NCBI GenBank assembly: GCA_033442325.1
Contig: JAWQFM010000008.1
Location: forward strand, 1,596,287-1,660,286
Origin: Salpingoeca rosetta
Taxonomy: Eukaryota > Protista > Choanoflagellata
Direction: 5' to 3'
DNA length: 64,000 bases
Shown here: one piece after another, positions 7,162-23,660 of the stretch
Numbering within the stretch: position 1 is the first letter of the stretch
Layout: each line of letters starts with the position of its first letter
The notes under the pieces: generated by a model
What the model saw: the letters and a program-made list of their open reading frames with translations, nothing else
Database searches by the model: none
What the model was told of the DNA's origin: nothing
Made by a program: the position numbers and the translations under genes

Positions 7162-7869
7162 CTGCACGCTAATGAGTCGAGAGAACAGAGGAACCCTCGT
7201 TTGCCTTGCTGTGCTTTGGTCTGTGCGGTGCGGCGATGCTGTTTGTCCGAGGGAGGTGGTGGGAGGTGTAGCTTGAACGTCCGTGACCGCGGGCGACACG
7301 CAGAATGAGGTTTGAACTGCGCACGACCGCGGTCTGCGCACCCATCGAATCGCAAAAAGAAAAAAAAAAACGGGATAATCACCAGAGCAAGCAATGAAGG
7401 AGAGAAGGAGAGGCGACAAAGCAAGCAAGCAAGCAGACAACGAATGGCCAGGCACGCGAATCGCATGGCCAGCAAGAGAGCAAGAGGACGACGGCATGGA
7501 ACACGCATCATTGTTATCATATCCGGCGCACGAACAGATGAGCGGAGAGACAATGAAGAGGGCGAAGGCGAGGGCAAGAGCAAGGCGGACGCCAGCACGC
7601 GGGAGACATCCGTTCCGGCGCAGTTCCACGAGTTTGTTGGTTGGAGCGTCCAGAGTCATGGAACGGTGCGAGTCGCAGTCCGTTCAACCAGGTGCGTCGT
7701 GTATGTGTGCGTGTGCATGTGTGTGTGTGTGTGCGTGCGTGTGCGCGCGCGCGCGTGTGCGTGTGTGTGCATGTGCGTGTGTATGCGTGAGCGACGAGTT
7801 TGGGTCCATTCTGATGCCATCGTTCACAACCACAACACAGGGCGTGACTGACTGTCTGACTGACTTAAT

Positions 7870-8055
7870 GCATGGCACCCAAACCGACAACGAGTGGCGT
7901 GGTAACCCCCACAACATACCTTCCTCCTGCCAGCCCAACGGACCGACAGGAAGGATGGCGACCTCATCCGGGTCCAGAAGAACGCGTGAGCCCTCCTGGA
8001 GCACCAGAGTGTGCCGCCAGACCATCCAGGCTAGAGGCCCAGATGGTGCCGATGC
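7870..8055 (-). ncRNA. Candidate Fanzor omegaRNA scaffold
   Basis: Microsatellite-free segment 3' of the Fanzor stop. Consecutive hairpins at 8047-8021, 8015-8000, 8000-7973, 7969-7953 and 7951-7925, plus 5'/3' complementarity (8055-8045 with 7879-7870). Confidence 0.55.
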
Positions 8056-8186
8056 TGTGTAAGGCAAGGTTCATCACACGTGCATGAGACTTGTGTGAGG
8101 GGCGTTAGTGAGGGGATTCTGCTTGAACAAGCAACGGCAGTCATCTGCAACAACCACGACAACAAGAGCAGCAGCACGAAGATGAA

Positions 8187-8218
8187 CGCAGCAGCAGCAG
8201 CAACAACAACAACAACAA

Positions 8219-8274
<56 letters not shown>

Positions 8275-8275
8275 T
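8187..8275. repeat. (CAG/CAA)n trinucleotide tract just 3' of the Fanzor stop
   Basis: Direct reading. Confidence 0.9.
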
Positions 8276-11200
8276 CATCCCACGTTTGCTATGCTCCATT
8301 CGCGACACATGCGGCGCGACACTGTCACCAGCCCGTTATCCATATCAGGACCGTCCGGCTCGGAGGACCCACGCCACGGACCAAGCTCACCGTTTGCCTC
8401 CTCCACCAGGGACCTGCACACCCACAAGGCACGGGCGCATCGATTGCGGTGAGATTGCGGAACAGCACACACACACGTGCACACACGTGCACACATGCAC
8501 TCGCACATGCACATGCACACACACACACACACGTGTGCACACATGCACTCGCACATGCACACACACACACATATATACAATTTACACTCACTCATACGCA
8601 TTTACACACACACACACACACATGCGCTCACGCACAAACTCATGCACTCACATGTACACACATGCACACTCGCATACACACATGCACACACGCATTCACA
8701 CGTGCACACACGCATACACGCATACATATTTACACACACGCATTCACATACACACGCACACGCTCGCCTACATGGAACCATACCTCGCAGCGATAGTCTT
8801 TGCGGCAGCAACGTCTCGGTCAGCAGACGCACCGCAGTGCGTACACGTGGCAATCCTGTCAACCATTTGCGTACACACGTGCATGAGCACACACGCATAT
8901 CCGCACCCTCTTCTCTCATACATGCGCACACACACACAACCACGCATATCCGCACCCTCTTCTCACATACATGCGCACACACACAACCACCCATATCCGC
9001 ACCCTCTTCTCTCATACATGCGCACACACACACACACAACCACGCATACCCGCACCCTCTTCTCACATACATGCGCACGCACACACACAACCACGCATAT
9101 CCGCACCCTCTTCTCACATACATGCGCACGCACACACACAACCACGCATATCCGCACCCTCTTCTCACATACATGCGCACACACACACACACAACCACGC
9201 ATATCCGCACCCTCTTCTCTCATACATGCGCACACACACACACACAACCACGCATATCCGCACCCTCTTCTCACATACATGCGCGCACACACACACACAC
9301 AACCACGCATATCCGCACCCTCTTCTCACATACATGCGCACACACACAACCACGCACATTCATGCACATACCTCGTTTGCTCGTCAATGCGGTTTGGCCA
9401 GGCACAGCAGAGGGAATACTTTGTCGTCCTGAACTCCTCCACAATTTTTGTGTCGACCCGGCAGCCGATGGCGCGGCGTAGCTCCAGGATGGGAGCCTTT
9501 GTCCCTCCGCCGCGACCCTTATGGACGCTGGGAGCAGGAGGCAAGAGAGGCAAGAGGCGAGTTCAGTTGGGCTGTTGTCGGTGCGGCGTGACCGTTGGAT
9601 GTGGGCAAGGGTGCATTGTTGTGCGTGTGTGTGTGTGTGTGTGTGTGTGCGTGCGCGTGCGTGCGTGCGTGTGTGCGTGTGTGCTTACCAGTCTCCGAAG
9701 AACACCCGACAGTCGCGTCCAAAGCGTGTCGCAAGCTCGCCGGCGACTCTGCTTCGGAAGCGACAGTGCTTCAGCTTCTCATGAAGCCTCCACTTCAACT
9801 CTCGCCTGCTCACACCTTCCCTCAAACACTCCCTCGCAGACGCAACCACATCGTCCACGCTCCCTGGCTCCGCACCCCCGCCCTGCTCTTCCCGTTCTCG
9901 CTGCTCCCGCTCTTCCTCTCCCTTGTCCCTGCCTTCCTGCCCCTCTCCCTTGTCCCTGCCTCCCTGCTCCTCCTGCTGCTGTCGTCTCAGCTGCTCCTCC
10001 TTCTCAATCCGTGCCTTCTCTTTCCTGCGCCTGCTCCTCTCCCTCTTCGTCCGCTTGCCCCGCTCCCTCTTCTTCCTGCGTGACCCCGTCTCCCCCTTCC
10101 CCATCGCCCCTCCCTGCTCCCCACCCTCGTCGCTACCCCCTGACCTTGCTGGCACTGTCGCCGTTGGCTTGTGGTGTCGCCGTCCCCGCCCCGTATACAA
10201 CTGGTTCGCTATTCGCTTCTGTGACACCAGCATTTTTTTGCCGTCTTGGATCCGAACGCATGCCAGCGGGATGCGGGTGCCTGGGTCGACCCCAACCACG
10301 GGTGTGATGGGGCTGGTGTCGCAGACGGTGTCGCGGCGCGCGCTGGGCTCCACCAGGAGGTATGCCGTGTAGCCGTCCGTCCTGATGGACGTGACGCGAC
10401 GCTTCCGGAACTGCCTGGCCACGTCTGCTCCGAGGAAATCGAGGAGGGACGGAGCTTGCCTTGGCTGTGGTCGCACTGCGGCAGGCTGTCGGCACTGGCG
10501 CTGGGAGTGGCCGAGGCGGCCACACTTGCAGCAGGTCAGGTACCGTAGTAGTCCTGCATCTAGTTGTATGAAAGGGTGCTTGTTTGTGAATGTGGGGAAT
10601 ATCTTGAACGAGGTCAAGTCGGTGTCGGGCGGTGCAAGGGTCCTCGCAAGATGCTGCGCGGCGCCGATGTAGAGGGCCAGCTCGGCCGTGTGCTCACATG
10701 CGAAGCGCGCGCCTTCGTCATGGTGCTCCGCCACCTTCTTCAGTTGCCGTTGAGCAGCTCTCGCCTTGTTCTTGAGATCCCGTTGGAGGAGCGGGGTGAA
10801 CTCCTTGGACGCCAGGTTCAGCAGCTTGTATGCCTAAGTGGTGAAGATGAGCACGTGCAAACACGCGTGTGAGTTGGTTGTGTGTGCATGTGTATGAGTT
10901 GGTTGTGTGTATCGCGTTGGTCGAGCTGGGACACACACCGCGATGCATGATGTAGCAACAGCAGGCATGGGAGTAGGATCATCAAGCAGACAAGGCAAAC
11001 ACGCAAGCATGCGCACAGACATACCATGGTGGCCGTCATCCATTTCGGTGGGTCCGGTATCCCCACGCCGTGCTGTCGGAGGATTGACAGCATCGGATGC
11101 TGGCTATGTTTTTTGTGGTTGCGCAGTGTGGTGAAGAGGTTGCTTAGCTTGTCTGCTGTCAGCTGTGGCGCCAAGTGCTGGAAGCAGTAGGCAGGTCTTG

Positions 11201-14200
11201 GGGATTTGCCTGTGGCTGCTGCTGTGACTGTTGTTGCAGTGGCGGGCGGTGTTGTTGCTGCGGCTGCTGTTGCTGTGGCTGCTGTTGTTTGCTGCTGCAC
11301 CTTTTGCCCTTTGCACGGGTTGTCAGACGGCGACGCCGCTCGGGACTTCTTGGGGCCCTTCTTCTTCTTTCTTCTTCTTGAGGGTCTTCGACGCCTTCGG
11401 CACGCTCCTGGCCTCGCGGAAGGCGACCTTGCGCTCCACAATTTCCTTTCTTGTGGTCTGGGCGAGTCCGCCAGAGTGGAGAGGATTTCCCGGTGGTGTT
11501 GTTCCGCAGTGCGCAGAATGTGCAGGTAGAGTGCCGTGGTTGCAGTGCACTTCATCTGCCCAGCATACCTGCGTCAAGCGTGGATGTGCGTGACAAGGCA
11601 GGGCGGGTGTGCGCATGCATGAGCGTGTGATTGCGCACGCGGGCACGAACCTCGCATGAAGTGCGAGAGTGGGATGAAGGGTGCATGGTGCAGTGAAGGA
11701 AGCAGTCAGGCAGTTCAGCGCATTGTCGGCCATACCTGCACATCTCCAGCACCTTTGAGCGCTCCAGCTCCACTCCAAGCCGCTTGAAGGGCATCAGGAC
11801 CGCCACCCTGTTGTGCACCAACATCGATAATTGCAGTTGGAAGAGGGCAAAGTGTGAGCGGGCGCAGGGCCAAGCGACAAGGGTTCAGTCACAGGTGCAG
11901 ACGGCAAGCGGTTCACGCAGCACAAACACAACGCATGCAACATAGCGCAGCAGGCAGGCTATGCAAGAGTAAACCTTGGGTTCTTGTTCTGATCTTGACC
12001 GCGTCGCTTCTGGCCACGTTTGCCCCGCTTGGTGCTCTTGCCACAATCGTCACGTCCATTGTGATCGCGAGGCTTGCGCCCTGGACGCCGCGAACGCTAC
12101 GTCACCATACAAAACACGTCACCAGATAGTACATAAGTCTACAGCGCAAAATCTCAGGGTTTCAGGCACAGCAAGCACAGCGCACCACACACGGGCGATG
12201 GCATACGCAACCATGTTGAGACTTACGTGTGATGTTGTCTCAAGTCGACCATTCCGCATGTCGGATACGATGGCTTTGAGAGCCGGGCGAAGCCGCACAC
12301 GGTGGCAGGTGTGGCCCGTGTCAGGGTCTGCACGTCCACGTGCGCGTTCCACGGCATTCTCCACGTGCACCACTCCGGCGACCGTGCGCCCCTAATGTGG
12401 TTGGTTGCAAACATGTCGGTGAGACGTGAGTGTCTTACAGTGGTTGTGCGATACAAATCAAAGCAGGGCCGTACAAGCAGGCGCACGCTCCGCAAGACAT
12501 TGCAACCCCCCACGCAAGGCATTCACGCAAGACACTGCAATATCATACCTCGTTTGCGGGGTCGCTAGTGAACTCAAACAGAGGGGTTGTGGCAGGATGG
12601 GCGCTGTCGCCGTCGTCGTCGGCCGGCTCTGGTGCAAGTGGTGGCAGCCTGCGCCTTGCCTGCGCAGTGTCGTCCCAGACGACCTGGCAGGTAAAGGCAA
12701 GCATGGCATGACGCACCTTTGCGTCGAGGTCGTCGGTTATGATGTAGTTTTGCCTGAGGTGCTGCATGATGTCGGTGTAGGTCTTGTATTTGTGTGTGAC
12801 GTACATCGCCGTGCGCATGCCGATCCCGTGAATGTGCGCACCTGGTGAGCAGGGGAAGGGGCAGCAATGCGTGAGTACTTGGCGCACACGAGCACACGAA
12901 GAGAGAGATAGAGATAGAGAGACAGAGAGAGAGATAGGGGAGGGAGAGACGGAGAGACAGAGAGAGATAGGGGAGGAGGGATGCAAGTACACACGTGCAC
13001 ACAGACAGACACTTGCACGCTTACAAACGCGCATACATGCAAGCATGCACAGACAGACGCGCAGGCATACACACAGGCAAACACGTAAGGCCAAGCACGT
13101 GCATAACTCATACCGGAGTGCTTTGGAAGGTAATCGCAACCGGACAGTACAGCAGCAAGCTGCAGCGTGTCCAGGCGAAGATCGCGAAGCGACAGGCGAA
13201 CGCCGTAGCGCGTTAACGTGAGCTCCTGCAGGTGGTGAAACTGGATCGAATCACAGGTCCTGCCAGGTGTGTGATGTGATGTGAGTGGGGCAAGGCAGCA
13301 GCAGGTCGCGCGCGGTGAGATCAAAACGCTTGTTACAAGGAGCATGGTGGGAAGTCGACGTGGCAAAGGCAGGTCAAATGCACTCAAAGGCACGCCAAGT
13401 GGCACGCACAAGCATGCACAAGCAAGCAAGCGGGACATCAACACGATGGCATCAACACGATGGCTCACCCGGAGCTTCGCAGGTTGCGGAGGACGTGGGG
13501 CACGCCAAAGCACAGCATGTCGCTGTCGTCGCTGAGGACGGCAGCGACACGGCCGGTCCGGGCCATGAAGGCGAGTTGGGCGTCGGCCTCGTAAGGTGCC
13601 ACCACGTACTCTGTGAGGCCAAGCACAAACAAGCACAGCGGGTTCGTGAGGAAGAACGGTCTCCGTGCAAGCCACTCGGACACAAGATGGGGGCGGGACG
13701 GAGGAAGGGGCACAGAGGGCTCACAAAGATGGTCAAGTGTCACTGCCAGCGCGCGCACACACACGTGCACGCACAGCAGGGCAAATCAAGCGATCACATG
13801 CATGCACAGGAGGGCAAATCAAGCGATCACATGCACCAATGTTGAGGCGATCCAGCATGGCCATGAGGGTGCGTTGCATGTCACGGCTGACGTGCAATGC
13901 CCTTCTGCTGGCCTTTCTTGCTTCGTGGACTTTTCCTTGCTTGCGGAGCTTGAGCGCCTCCTCTCTCGCGGCCCTGTAACATCCACAATCCATGACAAAG
14001 AACGGTGCGTGAGCGTGACAAGCGTTGGCTGCAGGGCGGTTGCAGCTCTGCTCTTGAGCAATCACAGGCAGGTGTTCTTACTTTCGTTGGCGCTGACGGC
14101 GCGCGTTTTCCTCTGCTTTGGCGGCGAGGGGAGCGCCATCAAACACCACGACAGGTGTGATTCCGGCTGTCGTCAGGAGGGCGAGCCTCTTGAAGACAAA

Positions 14201-14655
14201 TCTGCAGCGTTGACACGCATGTCACAGAGTGAGTAGTAGAAGCACGGAAGCAGCAGGCAGCACAATGTGGCAGGGCTGGCATGCATGTACAGGCGTGGGG
14301 TGATGGTGTGTGTCGTACCTGTAAGGACGTAAGTCCTCGGCGTTGCGCAGCAGTTCCAAGGACCTGGAATAGCATCCTGTCAAGTGCATCGATGTGAGTA
14401 GATAGAAAGGAGGAAGGGAAGGGAAGGGTGTTCGAGATCATGTTTGAGGGCGATCCAGGAGGGCGACGCAATCAAGCAGGCAGAGCAATCAAGCAGGCAG
14501 AGCAACCAAGCAGGCAGAGCAACCAAGCAGGCAAACCCCTTACCCTTATAGGCAAAGGATGATATGTCAATGGCCACGCGTTGGCCAGTGAACCTTTCAA
14601 GGTTCACTGTCTGTACCACGGGGCGTACCAGGTTGATCAGTCCTGGTACGCCCAT
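8275..14655 (-). CDS. EXO1/XPG-family 5' nuclease fused to a Fanzor (TnpB-like RuvC RNA-guided nuclease); 15 exons, ~1140 aa
   Basis: Exons 14655-14544, 14376-14319, 14201-14082, 13973-13837, 13610-13469, 13259-13114, 12841-12549, 12391-12227, 12096-11975, 11807-11736, 11568-11025, 10833-9689, 9527-9372, 8855-8784 and 8413-8275. All introns are GT..AG, phases match and the total is 3423 nt. EXO1 motifs: [45 protein letters not shown]. Fanzor motifs: LYLHILR, FKIFP..FIQLD, SIRTDGY, VGVDPG (RuvC-I), [14 protein letters not shown] (RuvC-II), [14 protein letters not shown] (Zn finger plus RuvC-III). Confidence 0.88.
8890..9360. repeat. Intronic minisatellite, ~44-50-bp unit, ~10 copies
   Basis: ACCACGCATATCCGCACCCTCTTCTCACATACATGCGCAC(AC)n repeated within Fanzor intron 13. 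Confidence 0.95.
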
Positions 14656-15328
14656 GTCTCACACACACACACACACACAGGCAACAACGCAAGCACACGC
14701 GAAAACACGTGCGCAAGCGACCCAGACCCAGGCGTAAAACTGCTGAGTCAGCAAAAATGGAGAAGCGAGCACAATTTCGTGAGGACAACGATGATGAACG
14801 CAGCCGCGCGGCGCAACGGGTAAGCGAAAACAAGATTGGAGATGGGCAAGGGCGAGAGGGGAGGTGGGACAAGGGCGAGGAGAGAGGAGAGAGGAGAGAT
14901 GGGAGATGGGAGACGGAGACAAGGCCCCGTGCCGTCACAAAAGACGATGGCCGCAGAACACCGATGGGGTGCCAACGAACAGCAAACATCTGCAAGGTAT
15001 GCTGTTACAGGAAGGGGAGGGGGAAGAGGACATGGATGGATATTGGGATATTGGGCAAAGGCGTACCTTTTGTTGATGCTTGGGTGAGGCGGGGAGGGGG
15101 GAGGCGAGTGCGGAAGAAGAAACCGGGCGCTGCTGGAGATAGCTGAGGAGAGGGTGACGGGGGGGGGAAGCGAGAGAAGGAGAGAGGAAGATGGTGAGTC
15201 GAGGATGCATGATGCTGTCAGCGTACAGATGTGCGGGCGGTGCTCATGCGCTCTTTCACACACTCACACCACGCACACGCAGGCAAACAGGTGCACAACC
15301 ATGCCTGGCAGTCATCCTCACTCTCTCA

Positions 15329-15364
<36 letters not shown>

Positions 15365-15393
15365 GGCAAACAGGTGCACAATCATGCCTGGCG

Positions 15394-15468
<75 letters not shown>

Positions 15469-15627
15469 GGTGCACAGTACAGGTGCACAATGACGACGGC
15501 GTCATCCTCACTTACACGCAGGCGCAGACGAGCGGGAAAATGAATGTGGCACAAGTGAGTGAGTGTGTTTGTTGTGTTGCAGTCTGTGCGATCGTTCGCA
15601 CACGCACGTGTGTCTGCAATTGTATGT

Positions 15628-15847
15628 GTGTTTCGTCTCCCAGCCCCAGTTATGCAACAAGCACGTGCGTGTTTCGTCTCCCCCCCCCACAGTTATGCAA
15701 CAAGCACGTGCGTGTTTCGTCTCTCCCCCCCCCCCAGTTATGCAACAAGCACGTGCGTGTTTCGTCTCCCCCTCCCCCAGTTATGCAACAAGCACGTGCG
15801 TGTTTCGTCTCCCCCTCCCCCAGTTATGCAACAAGCACGTGCGTGTT
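15628..15847. repeat. Intronic minisatellite, ~42-bp unit x5
   Basis: GTTATGCAACAAGCACGTGCGTGTTTCGTCTCCCC.. repeated. Confidence 0.95.
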
Positions 15848-16433
15848 TAGCGCCACGCAACACACACACACACACACAATCACACACACACACACACACA
15901 CACAATCACAGGTGCCACGCCGAGAAGTTGGCACGGCACGAGTAGCTCTGCGGTTCCGTGAGCGGCCAGCGGGCGGTTGCGCTGGACATTGTGTGCATGT
16001 ACGAGCAGCCGCGATGGCTGACGGTTGAGGAGTCGCGGGAGCTGCTGGAGAAGGAGGCGGTGGCGCTGTCGCACACAAAGGCGAAGAAGGCGCGGAGAAA
16101 GGCACGCAAGGAGGCAGAGCAGGAAGAGGATGATAAGGATGGTGATGAGGATGGCGAGGACGATAAGGCTGAGGAGAAGGACTCCAAGAAGACAGGGAAG
16201 AAGAAAAACAAGGGCAAGGCAAAGGGCAACAAGGGCAAGGGCAACAAGCACGGCAAAGACACCACCAGCACCGACGACGACGATGCGAATGGCGATGATG
16301 ACGAAGACAAGAAGAGCGAAGGCGACGTGCTGGAAGTGAGCACGACGCAACTCGACGGCCCCTGTGACATCATGCACCTCCTGCGAACAGCAGAGGCGCT
16401 TCCCCTCACCCTTCACGCCCACAGGTGAGCTCA

Positions 16434-16483
<50 letters not shown>

Positions 16484-17907
16484 GTGCTGATGAGCGTGTT
16501 GTCGTCTTGTGAGCGTCCGAGTTTGCTCTGCTTGTGTTATTGTCCTGACATCCACACCACCCTCACTCTTTCATGGCCAACTTCTTCGTCGCAATCCATG
16601 ATCTCCTTCACCCTCTCTTCTTGCTCACTCCACCTCCCTTCCTTCATCTGCAACAGAGACAAGCGGCTTCAGATTATGCGCGCGTCCTCGGGCAAGTACC
16701 TGAGCCGCACCCCCGACATGCTGCTCCGCCTGACCATGGCATACCTGCTTGGCCTGCACCACGTCAACCTCACGCTGCTGTGGGCCGACGCGAAGAAGGC
16801 GCTTGGCGAGTTTGCCCGCTACCGCCCGCTAGTGCTGTGGACGCTCTTTGAGGACAAGTTCATGCGCGTGCTTGACGCGAGCGTGGAGATGGGCGAGATC
16901 ATGACGGAGCAGGCGCGCACCATTGGCCAGCAGCAGGTGACAGACTCGGCACACCGCATCGTCGACGACCGCTTGGACGTGCTGTCGTTCCGGTGTCTGG
17001 TGCACCCGCTGGAGCATCGCATCAACCTTCTGCAGAAGCCGGACTGGGACAACAACATGACGCAGGTTGCAGACCGGTTTGTCAACGCCGTGTGCCCGCA
17101 ACCGCGCGTTGATGTGCTCAAGCTGATGCAAACCTTTGCCGAGCTCGCCAACACCTGGCCCCTCCTCACCGAGCAAAAGCACAGGTGCGTTGGTATGCTT
17201 GTTGTAGGTGCGTGCGTGCGCGTGCGTGTGTGTGTGTGAGATCGCATGTGCGCGTGTGCGTGTGTTTGTGAGATCGCCTGTGCAAACCACCCTGCCTGCG
17301 TTTGTGCCTGCGAGACTGGTGCATTTGGTTTGATGTGTACCTGGGATCAGTGCCATTGCTGCTCAACAGAGGGCTGCGCTTGAACGTTGTTGTATTGTAT
17401 CCCCATTTCCCATCTCCGCTCGTCTCCATGCTCATGGCCATCCCTCCGTCCACCTCAACAGACGCTGGTTGAGAAGTTCCTCCAGCTGCACGACGACTAC
17501 CTGGTGGTTGAAGAGGGAGCAGGAAAACTGCAGGACATTTCCGTCGCAAACGCCGGCCTCGCGGGTGCGTTCACGCGCTGCTGTCGTGTCTTTTATTTTG
17601 CTCCAACATGTTATGTGATCTTGCTTCCACCTGCTGTGGCGATTGCAGTGTGGTAATATGACACCTGTTGTTTGCACGGGTTGCTGTGCCGACCCCAGCG
17701 CTTGTGCTCAATTCTTACCGTCGACTCCTCGCTTCACAATCTGCATGTTGTCGTGCGTGCCTGCAGGCATTTCGATGCAGTCGCTCGGCATTGAGGATCT
17801 TGGCGGCGACCTCGACAATCTCAGTGACGATGAGAGCGTCAGCAATGACGACGACGAGGAGGACAATGATGACCGGCGCCGGAAGCGCAGCGCGATGCAG
17901 CACGACG

Positions 17908-18050
17908 GCCGTGGTGGTCGTGGTGGTCGTGGTGGTCGTGGTCGTGGTGGTCGTGGTCGTGGTGGTCGTGGCCGTGGCCGTGGTCGTGGTCGTGGTCGTG
18001 GTCGTGGCCGTGGTCGTGGCCGTGGTCGTGGTCGTGGCCGTGGTGGTCGT
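17908..18050 (+). repeat. Coding (GGT CGT)n repeat encoding an RG/RGG tract
   Basis: GRGGRGGRGRG.. inside a UTP20-like exon. Confidence 0.85.
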
Positions 18051-18543
18051 GATAGCAAGCGCCCAAAGCGGGAGGATGACACTTCTAACGACAACCCTGA
18101 CGATGATGACACGAAGCGCGATGGTGCCGACGCCACCAACGATGGCGACGATGCTGTGCAGGCGTATGATCCAACGGCGGCTGCGCGTCGTCGCGTGTTC
18201 TGGCGGCGGCGGCGGTTCTGGCGGCGGCGGCGGCAGAAGCGCGGAAAGGTCGCGCTGAGCCAGATGGAGGCCATGCTCTCTGATGGAAGCCATGCTCTCT
18301 GTGCTCGCCAGCTTCAACAACGGGAAGGCGCTGATGGAGTGGGAGCGCCTGCAGGCGATTGTGCACAACTTCCTGCACCACTCTGACGCGAACATCCGCG
18401 CCAACGCCCTCAAGGCAAGCGCTTCGTTCAGCCGCGTGGTGCGCAAGTACCTGGAGCCCATGATGGCTGTCAACACGGAGATGGGGCCCCAGCTCACAGA
18501 GCGCTTGAAGACATTCAGCGTCGCCTCCCCAGCCGGTGTGTGT

Positions 18544-18649
<106 letters not shown>

Positions 18650-18891
18650 GTGTGAACCTTGTAGCATTTTTTTCGTGATTCCGTTCACACTCGCTGTACA
18701 ACACTTACCCCCATACGATTCACCGCCACCCCTTTCTACACGTGTGCAGTCGTAGCACCGGAGCATGTTGAAGAGGTGACAACCGTGTTCTTCCGGCTGC
18801 TACAGGCCAAGATGTTTGCGCGCAAGGGCAAGTCCCAGAAGTACTCGCCCAAGTTCCAGCGCGCCCTCATTCTCCGCTACTTGGCCGACTG

Positions 18892-19071
18892 NNNNNNNNN
18901 NNNNNNNNNNNNNNNNNNNNNNNNNNNNNNNNNNNNNNNNNNNNNNNNNNNNNNNNNNNNNNNNNNNNNNNNNNNNNNNNNNNNNNNNNNNNNNNNNNNN
19001 NNNNNNNNNNNNNNNNNNNNNNNNNNNNNNNNNNNNNNNNNNNNNNNNNNNNNNNNNNNNNNNNNNNNNNN
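18892..19071. other. Assembly gap
   Basis: Run of N. Confidence 1.
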
Positions 19072-20256
19072 CCAAGGGGGGGAGTTTCAAAAGCTCCTGG
19101 TGGTGGGGGGGTTTTTTTGTTTTTGGGAAAACGCGTGTGGGCCCACGTGTGTGTTTGTGTGAACATGTGTGTGTGTTGGTGTGCACGTGTGTGTTTGTGT
19201 GAACATGTGTGTGTGTGCGTTTGTGTTTGTTTGCGTCCGCACTCGTCACAGGTGTTTGTGCCGTGAATTGTGTTGTCGTGTGACCATTCCTTAACCCTAT
19301 GTTGCCCGTTGCCCTGATCTTCCCTTTCCACCACACTTCTCAACACCCCCCCCCACCCGTCACAGGTTTCCTGATGCTTGCCGAGTCGCTGCTGAAGGTG
19401 TTTGACACGCGTCTGCAGCCGCACCTGCCGATGATGGTGGCCATCATGGTGCAGATGGCGCGCGAGGCCCACGCTCTGCTCGCCGTCGTGATGAGGTCGC
19501 CCCGCGCTACATCCGTGAACTCAGGATGATCCGCAAGCTCAGCATCCGCCGCCTCTGCAGCCTCTACAACTTCTTCAACGCGGTGCGTGGCGTGTGTGCG
19601 TGTGTGCGTGTGTGCGTGTGTGTGTATGTATGTGTGTGTAATAGGAGGGTGCACCGGAATTGGAGACATGCACGTGCGTCAATCAACCACACACGTGTAT
19701 GCGGATCATGTGTTCGTCCGTCATTGCGCCTGCTCTGTCCTTCTTCCTACTGTGCACGTGTGCAGAAATTGCTGGAGCCGTTTGCGAGCGCGGTGCACGA
19801 GCACGTGATTGGGCCGCAGGTGGCGTCGCTGTATCACGAATGCTCAAACGCCGTCGTCCCCATCCTCCAACTCCTCATGTGAGCACACACCGCTGGGTGT
19901 TGATGAGGGCTACGCGCATTGGGGGTGTGGTTTCGGCCTCGTTTGTTGTTTGTGTTTTGATTCGCCTCCCTCCCATTTTGCCTCACGCAACGTGGCAAAC
20001 CTGCCCCAAAATCCATGAATGCACAACCGTTCTCCCCTGACCACTCCTGTTTGTGATCCCTCTCAATACTCCTGTCCTTCTGCAGCACGTGGAGCGGGGA
20101 TCCGAAAATGCACCGCATGAACAACACGGGACGATGGAGCGGTGGGACCAGCCCGAGGACATTCAAGAGCTGGGGAAATCGGTTCGTGCTCTGGTGTACT
20201 GTCACGTTGAGACGCCCGAAAGCCGGGAGGGGGGGGGGGGTAGTGGGGGGTGTTGT

Positions 20257-20324
<68 letters not shown>

Positions 20325-20701
20325 CTCGCGCTCTCTCCTTCATCACCCACCCACTTGTCTCTTTGTTCAGACGCACGACTTGATCCGCGGCATTATCGGG
20401 GCGAAGCACATATCCAGCGCCATGAGCGAAGAGAAGCACAAGGTCTGGCCGTATTGTTCTGCTCTTGCGCTTTGTCTTTGGGCTGTATTTGAGAGAGGAA
20501 AGGGTCATGGTGTGAGGGCGCATAGCACAGCCCTTTGTTGGGACTCACATCAATCACATGTCTGATGCATCGACCATGTTGTTGAAATCGTTTAGGTGTC
20601 GGCCAAGCGTGCTGTCAGACACCAGCGCGAGCAACAAGAGCTCATCACAAACCCGAAAAAGGTGTGTGTGTATTGTGTGTGTGTGCGTGTGTGTGTGTAT
20701 G

Positions 20702-20801
20702 NNNNNNNNNNNNNNNNNNNNNNNNNNNNNNNNNNNNNNNNNNNNNNNNNNNNNNNNNNNNNNNNNNNNNNNNNNNNNNNNNNNNNNNNNNNNNNNNNNN
20801 N
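20702..20801. other. Assembly gap
   Basis: Run of N. Confidence 1.
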
Positions 20802-21218
20802 GTGTGTGTGTGTGTGTGCGTTCGCGTCTTCATCAGAGGCACAGGGGGTTGGCCCGACTGTACTGTGCACGCCCCTTTTGTTTTGCGTTGCACGATACCG
20901 CGCCAGCCAGTTGCTCACCCCACCATTCTCCTTTATTTACTCCAGGCGCTGCGGCGCAAAGCGCGATCGCACGAGCTCAAGCGGGATGCGCGCCGGCGCA
21001 AGAACGCGGGCATTGGCGGCATGCCCATCAACCCCGTGGAGCTCAAGAAGCTGCACAACAAGCGGCGCGAGCACAACCGGAAGCTCAACCTCATGGACGA
21101 ATAGCCCCTTCCTTGGCGCTGTGTGTGTGTGTGTGCGTGTGCGTGTTGTGTTCTGTTCTGTTTGTCGCAGAACGACTTGTAAACAAACACCAACAGTGTT
21201 GTCAACACCGACACGCGG

Positions 21219-21278
<60 letters not shown>

Positions 21279-21393
21279 CACTCGATTTTTGGCAACGAGT
21301 CGCGCCTGGCCTCCCTTTCTGCTTTCATGATTCCCAGACTTAACTCAAGGCATATGCGAAGAGCAAGGGTGCGTGCAGGCGAGCAAGCAGACG

Positions 21394-21452
<59 letters not shown>

Positions 21453-21459
21453 AAACATT

Positions 21460-23037
<1,578 letters not shown>

Positions 23038-23660
23038 GTCTTGTCGTGCCCGCTTTGGTGAGTTGGTGGCAGCTCGCCTTCATCCTTTCATCGTCGTCGC
23101 TCAACACCTCGAAATTAGGCAAAAACATCATCGCCCATCGTGGATGATGGTGGTTGAAATTTCCTTTATTTTGCCGACGATTTGCACGAAAGATGCAACT
23201 TGACAGCGGTTGCTTGGGGCGTGTGCGTCACCCTTGCACCCCAAACCAGCGCAGATGCATGTGCAAGGCCGGCGTGGTGCTGCCGGGCAGCCTGCACACG
23301 ACTCAAATCCAACCACAAACGAGAAAAATAAAACCCTACCATTTCGTGCGTCACGTCCGTGATGAAAGTGCAAAGGTACAACAACAACAGCAGCGTGCTT
23401 TCCCCTCTCCTTCGCTTGTTGCGCTGTGGGAGAAACGAGGGTGTAGAATTGTAACGCACAACACTGCAAATTTTCTACAACGGAGTGGTTGGTGTCGGCA
23501 AAAGCAAAGAAGTGAAGCAGAAGAAGCAACGGACGACATCCATCCACAGAGCAAAGAGCGAGCGAGTGCTTGTTGACACACGACCGCCGCCCAACGCTAA
23601 AGAACAACAGCACCACCACCACCACCACCTTCGACAGGAACAGCCCCTACAACATACGCC

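Follow-up and report, generated by a model that had tools for sequence, protein, structure and literature searches.

A 15-exon gene in a dispersed repeat of Salpingoeca rosetta is predicted to join an EXO1-type nuclease to a Fanzor

The DNA analysed here (the window) is a stretch of 64,000 nucleotides (nt) from the choanoflagellate Salpingoeca rosetta (GenBank assembly GCA_033442325.1, contig JAWQFM010000008.1, positions 1,596,287 to 1,660,286 of the forward strand), and coordinates given without a contig name are positions within it. On its minus strand, at 14655..8275, the window carries a gene of 15 exons whose 14 introns all have GT..AG ends and matching phases. The open reading frame of 3423 nt runs from an ATG at 14655 to a TGA stop codon at 8277-8275, is preceded at a distance of 6 nt by a TGA in the same frame, and encodes a predicted protein of 1140 amino acids (aa). 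A first-pass annotation, made from the sequence alone, had proposed this gene as a fusion of an EXO1-type nuclease with a Fanzor; its coordinates, exon number, splice sites, phases and protein length of ~1140 aa were borne out by our rebuilt model, and all of the motifs that it quoted are present, among them AID (D30), GVDPG (aa 818), VEEFRTT (aa 1048) and DRDVAAA (aa 1083). The gene lies within a dispersed repeat and is laid out as follows.

7284..23352: ~16-kb dispersed repeat unit carrying the gene (the SAl-2 element), defined by its copies and their shared ends
14745..15066, minus strand: intron in the 5' untranslated region (UTR), from loose RNA read ends and GT..AG ends; the upstream non-coding exon starts at 15067 or beyond
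14655-14544, 14376-14319, 14201-14082, 13973-13837, 13610-13469, 13259-13114, 12841-12549, 12391-12227, 12096-11975, 11807-11736, 11568-11025, 10833-9689, 9527-9372, 8855-8784 and 8413-8275, minus strand: coding exons 1-15, each from high to low coordinate
14082..14655, minus strand: exons 1-3, XPG_N domain with equivalents of D30, D78 and the gateway residues K85/R92, from Pfam XPG_N and alignment to human EXO1 residues 59-96
13837..13973, minus strand: exon 4, helical-arch spacer separating the N region from the I region, ~45 aa (an EXO1/FEN1-like length), from the sequence
13469..13610, minus strand: exon 5, XPG_I region with equivalents of E150, D152, D171 and D173, from Pfam XPG_I and a match to human EXO1
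12549..13259, minus strand: exons 6-7, H3TH region (GCDY) and end of the EXO1-type nuclease domain, from the sequence and from similarity to host EXO1-like paralogs at aa 190-240
11736..12391, minus strand: exons 8-10, linker, with exon 9 basic and resembling a nuclear localization signal, from composition and the RNA joints of introns 7-10
11025..11568, minus strand: exon 11, N-terminal Fanzor region, from alignment to a second copy on contig C12 and to a divergent second family (family B)
9689..10833, minus strand: exon 12, REC-like region, CCHC knuckle (~10492-10533), RuvC-I GVDPG (~10279-10293) and a K/E-rich insert (~9865-10179), from the sequence and the family B alignment
8784..9527, minus strand: exons 13-14, RuvC-II VEEFRTT (~9422-9442), zinc ribbon (SLCC...CTHC) and RuvC-III ADRD (8813-8824), from Pfam PF07282 and a profile match to the mimivirus Fanzor2 ApmFz2
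7284..8274, minus strand: 3' region from the stop codon to the repeat end, candidate guide (omega) RNA site, with a boundary hairpin at 7284-7336

At the local stop-codon frequency of 1.9%, the chance of finding 1140 open codons is ~4e-10. For the 119 codons of the linker by themselves that chance is ~0.10, and the open linker frame taken alone is only modest evidence for a fusion. Within the linker, exon 9 has 17 K/R in 41 aa, confirming the basic character that had been described for it, and resembles a nuclear localization signal. Intron 13 carries a tandem array of ~9 units of ~53 bp (8880-9360), the copy number of which varies between the window and the copies of the repeat on contigs C12 and C10.

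Evidence that these exons belong to one transcript comes from two public stranded RNA-sequencing runs (raw reads), one RNA contig set and one DNA contig set, which we mapped over 9365-14900. In both RNA runs, and likewise in the RNA contigs, the joints of introns 1-11 fall at the predicted bases, and no such joint was found in the DNA contigs. Junction reads in run 1/run 2 numbered 30/33 for intron 1, 33/26 for intron 2, 94/76 for intron 3, 8/13 for intron 4, 11/18 for intron 5, 13/27 for intron 6, 7/15 for intron 7, 12/24 for intron 8, 16/23 for intron 9, 10/10 for intron 10 and 11/15 for intron 11. The evenness of the counts (7-27) across introns 4-11 indicates that nearly all transcripts reaching the Fanzor exons also carry the EXO1 exons, and no internal start is visible in them. 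In addition, one RNA contig of 2024 nt contains 144 nt of exon 7 followed by exons 8-9-10-11-12, i.e. it extends from the end of the EXO1 domain into the exon that holds RuvC-I, and further RNA contigs tile exons 5-6-7 and exons 1-5. Splicing of intron 13 is seen in loose read ends at 9371 (62 and 54 reads) that bear exon 14 sequence, and intron 12 is used by the NCBI gene model PTSG_12014 and keeps its position in family B. The donor of intron 14, which lies beyond the RNA-mapped stretch, is at the same codon position in family B and in the family of the window gene (family A). Upstream of the ATG, loose ends at 14741 (18 and 22 reads) bear sequence from ~15068 and place an intron with GT..AG ends in the 5' UTR.

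These data show that the EXO1 and Fanzor halves are carried on one fused mRNA, a conclusion that we hold with high confidence. The first-pass annotation had pointed to exons 8-11 as the place where two separate genes would reveal themselves; the junction reads there fall on the predicted joints and, with the exon 7-to-12 contig, they speak against two genes. It had also noted no independent ATG for the Fanzor. In this it was only partly right, as exons 10-11 do contain ATGs, two of them used as starts by the database models PTSG_12014 and PTSG_04012, whereas the RNA counts give no sign of a separate start.

Two further transcripts were observed on the plus strand. One, recognized from reads of opposite orientation, is antisense to Fanzor exons 12-13 (9365-10289) and has a GC..AG intron at ~9557-9839 (47 and 55 reads) plus two minor donor variants. 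The other is divergent, lies at 14757-14821 (MEKRAQFREDNDDERSRAAQR...) with its start ~100 bp from the fusion ATG, is spliced from 14821 to ~15478 (25 reads), and overlaps the 5' UTR intron of the fusion gene.

The N-terminal half was examined by domain searches run exon by exon, not on the whole spliced 1140-aa protein. Pfam XPG_N matched exon 1 (E=7e-6) and exon 3 (E=5.7e-8) and XPG_I matched exon 5 (E=1.9e-17); exon 4 alone and exon 7 alone gave no Pfam or PDB match. Among solved structures human EXO1 was the best match to exon 5, with 37.5 bits as against 25-35 for FEN1, 27 for XPG and 14 for GEN1, and the equivalents of E150, D152, D171 and D173 were placed via an equal-length match of 40 residues (human EXO1 residues 145-184). 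Exon 3 aligns with human EXO1 residues 59-96, with its best score again to EXO1, and retains D78, K85 and R92; the D30 and D225 (GCDY) equivalents were assigned by sequence position only. This half therefore combines XPG_N and XPG_I with a short arch of ~45 aa, an acidic site with the gateway Lys/Arg, and a closer match to EXO1 than to FEN1, GEN1 or XPG. The earlier description of the first ~370 aa as a full EXO1-type nuclease holds as regards the XPG_N/XPG_I/H3TH order and the catalytic residues, which are kept, but the domain ends sooner, at ~aa 325-336.

Orthology of this module to canonical EXO1 was considered and rejected: the genome has a more canonical gene, its apparent canonical EXO1, on contig C5 (C5:773475), and in the fusion the C-terminal partner-binding tail is replaced by Fanzor, for which reason we refer to an EXO1-type domain and not to the cell's own EXO1. 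Two extra EXO1-like host paralogs were observed at C20:311089-314223 and C2:2449612-2452743 (C2b), both of which start MGVPGL.. and carry ..GSDYLPK..; no Fanzor was found within 8-10 kb of either. The EXO1 module of the fusion belongs with these two paralogs, to which it is 46-47% identical, and the C20 paralog, its nearest and itself EXO1-type (53 bits, compared with 22-25 for FEN1 and XPG), has intron positions in common with the module at aa 38, 142/143 and 190/191. A small tree of nuclease domains grouped the module with EXO1-like genes as opposed to FEN/XPG-like genes with 86% support, a split that it resolves better than the order within the EXO1-like group. The intron positions shared with the host paralog, and a captured fragment of the host gene UTP20 in the same repeat (described below), suggest that a host EXO1-like paralog, captured at the level of DNA, is the most likely source of the module.

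The C-terminal half belongs with Fanzor and TnpB. Pfam PF07282 scored E=1.3e-5 and 25.7 bits, just under the cut-off of 26.3, and the precomputed Pfam annotation also gives PF07282. The published family motif, D-x(125-275)-[TS][TS]-x-x-[zinc finger]-x(5-50)-RD (Bao and Jurka 2013, PMC3627910), is found in full as D820, 232 residues, TT1053-1054, SLCC...CTHC, 5 residues and RD1084-1085. The first zinc-finger Cys is replaced by Ser with an adjacent CC (SLCC), as it is in family B. When a profile built from the two families over RuvC-II, the zinc ribbon and RuvC-III was searched against solved structures, ApmFz2 (PDB 9b0l) was the only significant match (E=2.4e-4), with its catalytic Glu (E467) and ADRD aligned; ISDra2 TnpB followed weakly, and no Fanzor1 structure scored at E<=10. 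Language-model neighbours of the protein were likewise Fanzor-type clusters (0.94).

This half of the gene has been annotated before in fragments, as PTSG_12014 (485 aa) and PTSG_04012. Bao and Jurka (2013, Mob DNA 4:12, PMC3627910) described SAl-2 as a Fanzor family in Salpingoeca with 3 copies and only its right end defined, modelled it as a stand-alone protein of 498 aa in 4 exons according to their table, and listed both Salpingoeca Fanzor families in the Fanzor2 column; the SAl-2 protein sequence is that of PTSG_12014, from the exon 11 Met to exon 14. The first-pass annotation had called the module Fanzor1-like with an intact D-E-D triad. Its Fanzor/TnpB character and the quoted motifs are upheld, whereas the Fanzor1 label is not, given the Fanzor2 listing of SAl-2 and the match to ApmFz2. 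As a separate observation, a copy of SAl-1, the other Salpingoeca Fanzor family, lies at C14:437487-437663 within an 813-aa open frame, double the 400 aa that was published, and it may carry an unrecognized N-terminal extension. No XPG_I locus was found near the SAl-1 copies, and none was found on contig C14.

A second, divergent family with the same arrangement is present in this genome. Family B, on contigs C2 and C7, has XPG_N, XPG_I and H3TH followed by Fanzor in the same order on one strand over ~3.5 kb, and its pieces can be joined by in-phase GT..AG introns. Identity to family A is 30% in XPG_N, 50% in XPG_I, 46% in the N-terminal Fanzor block, 30% in REC/RuvC-I and 57% in RuvC-II/III. 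The family B nuclease is only ~39% identical to that of family A and retains the acidic motifs, and exon 12, at ~30% identity, conserves the VVGxDPGTRxPL block. The exon 10/11 junction peptide CRYAGQM is collinear in the two families, and three intron positions are identical between them (family A introns 10, 12 and 14). On whether there was one fusion event or two, a tree of the nuclease domains gave supports of 48-62% from a query-anchored pseudo-alignment; either history would speak for maintenance of the pairing by selection.

The repeat that carries the gene has a collinear copy on C12, ~96% identical, and copies on C10 and C1 with internal deletions, from which the EXO1 exons are gone and in which the Fanzor is kept. 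A sharp end at 7284 is common to 4 copies, part of the same end occurs at 3 more loci, and the far end (~23352) is common to at least 10 loci. The last ~53 nt (7284-7336) fold as a hairpin ending at the boundary (217 nt folded, z = -2.0). Read along the sense strand, the stop codon and this end are ~1 kb apart, with the end downstream. Fanzor and TnpB guide RNAs are normally encoded in the 3' region downstream of the stop, and by analogy the interval between the stop codon and 7284 is a candidate site for the guide (omega) RNA; Rfam gave sub-threshold matches on CA-rich sequence only. Within the repeat, a UTP20_N fragment at 18283-18675 on the plus strand (part of a UTP20-derived stretch at 16343-20130) is ~91% identical to a fuller parent gene on C13 (~1674141-1679477) and occurs also in the C12, C10 and C6 copies, indicating that the element captures host DNA. 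No transposase was found in the repeat unit. The 10-bp sequence ACGTCCGTGA adjoins the window copy at either end, a possible target duplication that was not confirmed in other copies. At the far end (~23353-23370 and other copies) the flanks are often GATGA/GATGATG-like, not consistently across copies, and such flanking repeats may reflect target preference or duplication.

The integrity of the gene was compared between the window and C12 copies; the sequence reads as N at ~18850-19150 and ~20700-20800 in the window and over exon 5 (XPG_I) of the C12 copy, so that exon 5 is outside this comparison. The C12 copy is open through exons 1-15, with its ATG lost in this assembly, where exon 1 has a 16-bp deletion. 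In exon 11 of the window copy, ~38+8 codons (~11465-11370 and 11310-11288) are read in a frame unlike that of the C12 copy, most RNA reads and family B. As the frame of C12 and the RNA is the one conserved in family B, it is the window copy that reads these ~38+8 codons out of frame, through either mutation or assembly error; the differences are small indels that fall in short homopolymers. Over exon 1 the contigs of other runs, both RNA and DNA, are window-like and keep the ATG region, with 4 gap letters only compared with the 16-bp deletion of C12, and they combine this exon 1 with C12-like downstream exons, which suggests a haplotype in which the start is intact and exon 11 is in the conserved frame. 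The window and C12 copies differ by 23.5 synonymous and 25.5 non-synonymous changes, giving a ratio of non-synonymous to synonymous change (pN/pS) of 0.35 (p = 1.5e-4 against neutrality) and showing that purifying selection acts between these copies. By part, pN/pS is 0.45 for EXO1, 0.51 for the linker and 0.25 for Fanzor, on counts too small to test part by part.

Searches for relatives and for earlier reports covered sequence and literature. Exon 12, searched exhaustively with HMMER against 1.84 billion representatives, matched only this genome's own two proteins, and the same result came from word-indexed searches with the PTSG_12014 sequence and with the two-family profile, which were probably swamped by low-complexity words. 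The conserved C-terminal profile had no match in viral and metagenome contigs. In the literature searched, no paper treated Fanzor together with XPG, those in which Fanzor or TnpB occurs alongside exonucleases, flap endonuclease or EXO1 concerned engineered tools or were unrelated, and two broad Fanzor surveys mentioned no such EXO1-type domain. The first-pass annotation knew of no characterized example, and the literature searched contains no such fusion, but the Fanzor half itself was published in 2013 as SAl-2. What appears to be new is the RNA evidence together with the linker and the EXO1-type domain, and the finding corrects the gene models PTSG_12014 and PTSG_04012.

With fair confidence, we favour as a whole the interpretation that this is a single 15-exon EXO1-Fanzor gene in a ~16-kb repeat whose product cuts and then resects. 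That the fused mRNA specifies one fused protein is likely. The mRNA would be translated as one polypeptide with an EXO1-type domain at aa 1-~330, a basic linker, and a Fanzor/TnpB RuvC nuclease at aa ~450-1140. A guide RNA from the 3' region would direct the RuvC domain to a matching site, e.g. an element-free allele or a donor site, and the tethered EXO1 domain would remove the 5' strand at the break to leave 3' tails. Such tails would commit the break to homologous recombination templated by the copy that bears the element, and the element would be kept or copied. This cut-then-resect role, drawn from the known biology of Fanzor/TnpB and EXO1, is put forward tentatively and falls somewhat short of an even chance in our judgement. 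A further step, in which a ~16-kb element without a transposase spreads mainly by homing, the fusion cutting the empty homologous site, resecting it and forcing copy-in repair, is a speculative extension to which we give little weight.

Several observations weigh against the fusion acting as a single protein. Exons 1-4 have 3-8 times the junction reads of later exons, and an isoform that retains intron 4 (13611-13836) and meets an early stop is abundant (RNA contig depth 867), which suggests a short early-terminating transcript beside the full-length one. Translation could begin at the Met codons of exons 10-11, as the database models assume. Reads over exons 7-12 are mostly C12-like variants (31 of the 37 listed sites), and neither assembled copy is flawless, C12 being without its ATG and the window copy having the exon 11 frameshift. 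For the EXO1 part alone selection is not significant (5 synonymous and 7 non-synonymous differences). In AlphaFold2 predictions of the Fanzor half, one made by itself and one with a 4-row alignment, the mean predicted local distance difference test (pLDDT) score was 46, and the WED/REC/RuvC fold was not confirmed. Finally, the homolog searches found no relatives of the fusion outside this genome, a result that says little about its true range.

These points give some room to other explanations. The EXO1 exons could be a co-spliced host fragment carried as a passenger, the working product being Fanzor alone, made from an internal Met or from truncated copies. The repeat demonstrably takes up host fragments, as with UTP20, its C10 and C1 copies retain Fanzor without the EXO1 exons, the Fanzor exons are at 1.5-3 times the depth of exons 5-10, and the database models start in exon 11, with the open linker only weak evidence to the contrary (~0.1 by chance). 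However, every tested EXO1 catalytic residue is intact, two copies retain an open frame at a pN/pS of 0.35, the junction counts carry no sign of an internal start, and family B keeps the same order and acidic motifs in a nuclease that is only ~39% identical. Moreover, the UTP20 piece, at 91% identity to its parent, is young, and the EXO1 module, at ~47% to its nearest paralog, is old; on balance we consider such a passenger unlikely. That the family is a decaying relic, transcribed and spliced by inertia, seems to us very improbable. Each full assembled copy is indeed defective (the exon 11 frameshift in the window and the loss of the ATG in C12), other copies are deleted, and the early-stop isoform is abundant; against this stand a significant synonymous excess, the absence of a stop in ~1100 codons of either copy, and reads from other runs that suggest a haplotype in which neither the start nor the conserved frame of exon 11 is lost, the indels themselves lying at short homopolymers where they may be assembly errors.

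The fusion might also be functional with its EXO1 domain put to another use, such as cutting flaps or gaps on the displaced strand of the R-loop, widening nicks in a Cas3-like manner, maturing the guide, or processing element ends in transposition. XPG/FEN-family nucleases are known to act on flaps, nicks and gaps in addition to ends, the hairpin at the repeat boundary is the type of structure that such nucleases recognize, and a transposase was not found in the unit. The domain is closest to EXO1 and not to FEN1, GEN1 or XPG, however, and we regard these other roles as unlikely in comparison with resection of the ends that the RuvC domain would create.

Fanzors are eukaryotic RNA-guided nucleases under development as compact genome editors, and in eukaryotic cells end joining competes with recombination. 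If the cut-then-resect reading is true, this gene would be the first sign of Fanzor elements directly manipulating the choice of repair pathway, and it would offer an evolution-tested design for editors that favour templated repair. If the homing extension is also true, the element would be a self-contained, natural mobile element resembling a gene drive, found in a unicellular organism closely related to animals, and families A and B would represent two independent inventions or the long retention of one fusion. As S. rosetta can be cultured and edited and has a sexual cycle, the hypothesis is open to direct testing.

The fusion can be compared with several known systems. With human EXO1 (PDB 3qe9/3qea/5v0x series) it shares XPG_N, a short arch, XPG_I, H3TH, the acidic site and the K85/R92 gateway; human EXO1 continues into a long C-terminal partner-binding tail, where the fusion has Fanzor in its place. 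ApmFz2 (mimivirus L79, PDB 9b0l) and TnpB (ISDra2, PDB 8bf8 and 8h1j) have in common with it the split RuvC, the Glu beside [TS][TS], the zinc ribbon and the terminal RD, to which the fusion adds the N-terminal nuclease, the CCHC knuckle, a 110-aa K/E-rich insert and an atypical first Cys pair (SLCC). In contrast with compact IS607-like elements, the gene is housed in a 16-kb repeat, and here the guide RNA is a candidate only. SAl-2 (PMC3627910) is the same element, the published model of which is without the ten upstream exons, so that its EXO1 half was missed.

Type I CRISPR Cascade-Cas3 likewise pairs RNA-guided recognition with progressive strand degradation, using different folds and domains. 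Meers et al. 2023 reportedly described TnpB-driven transposon retention in IS200/605; there too a transposon nuclease provokes recombinational restoration of its element, with folds that differ from those of the S. rosetta element, which is known from sequence and RNA. Among man-made proteins, Cas9-EXO1 and T5-exo fusions have also been engineered. TREX2-SpCas9 is a further engineered fusion of a Cas nuclease with an exonuclease (PMC13370227). In such fusions, as would be the case here, an RNA-guided cutter is tethered to an end-processing exonuclease in one polypeptide. The engineered versions mostly use 3'-5' or viral exonucleases, whereas the predicted S. rosetta fusion is natural and transposon-borne, with a 5'-3' EXO1-type domain at its N-terminus.

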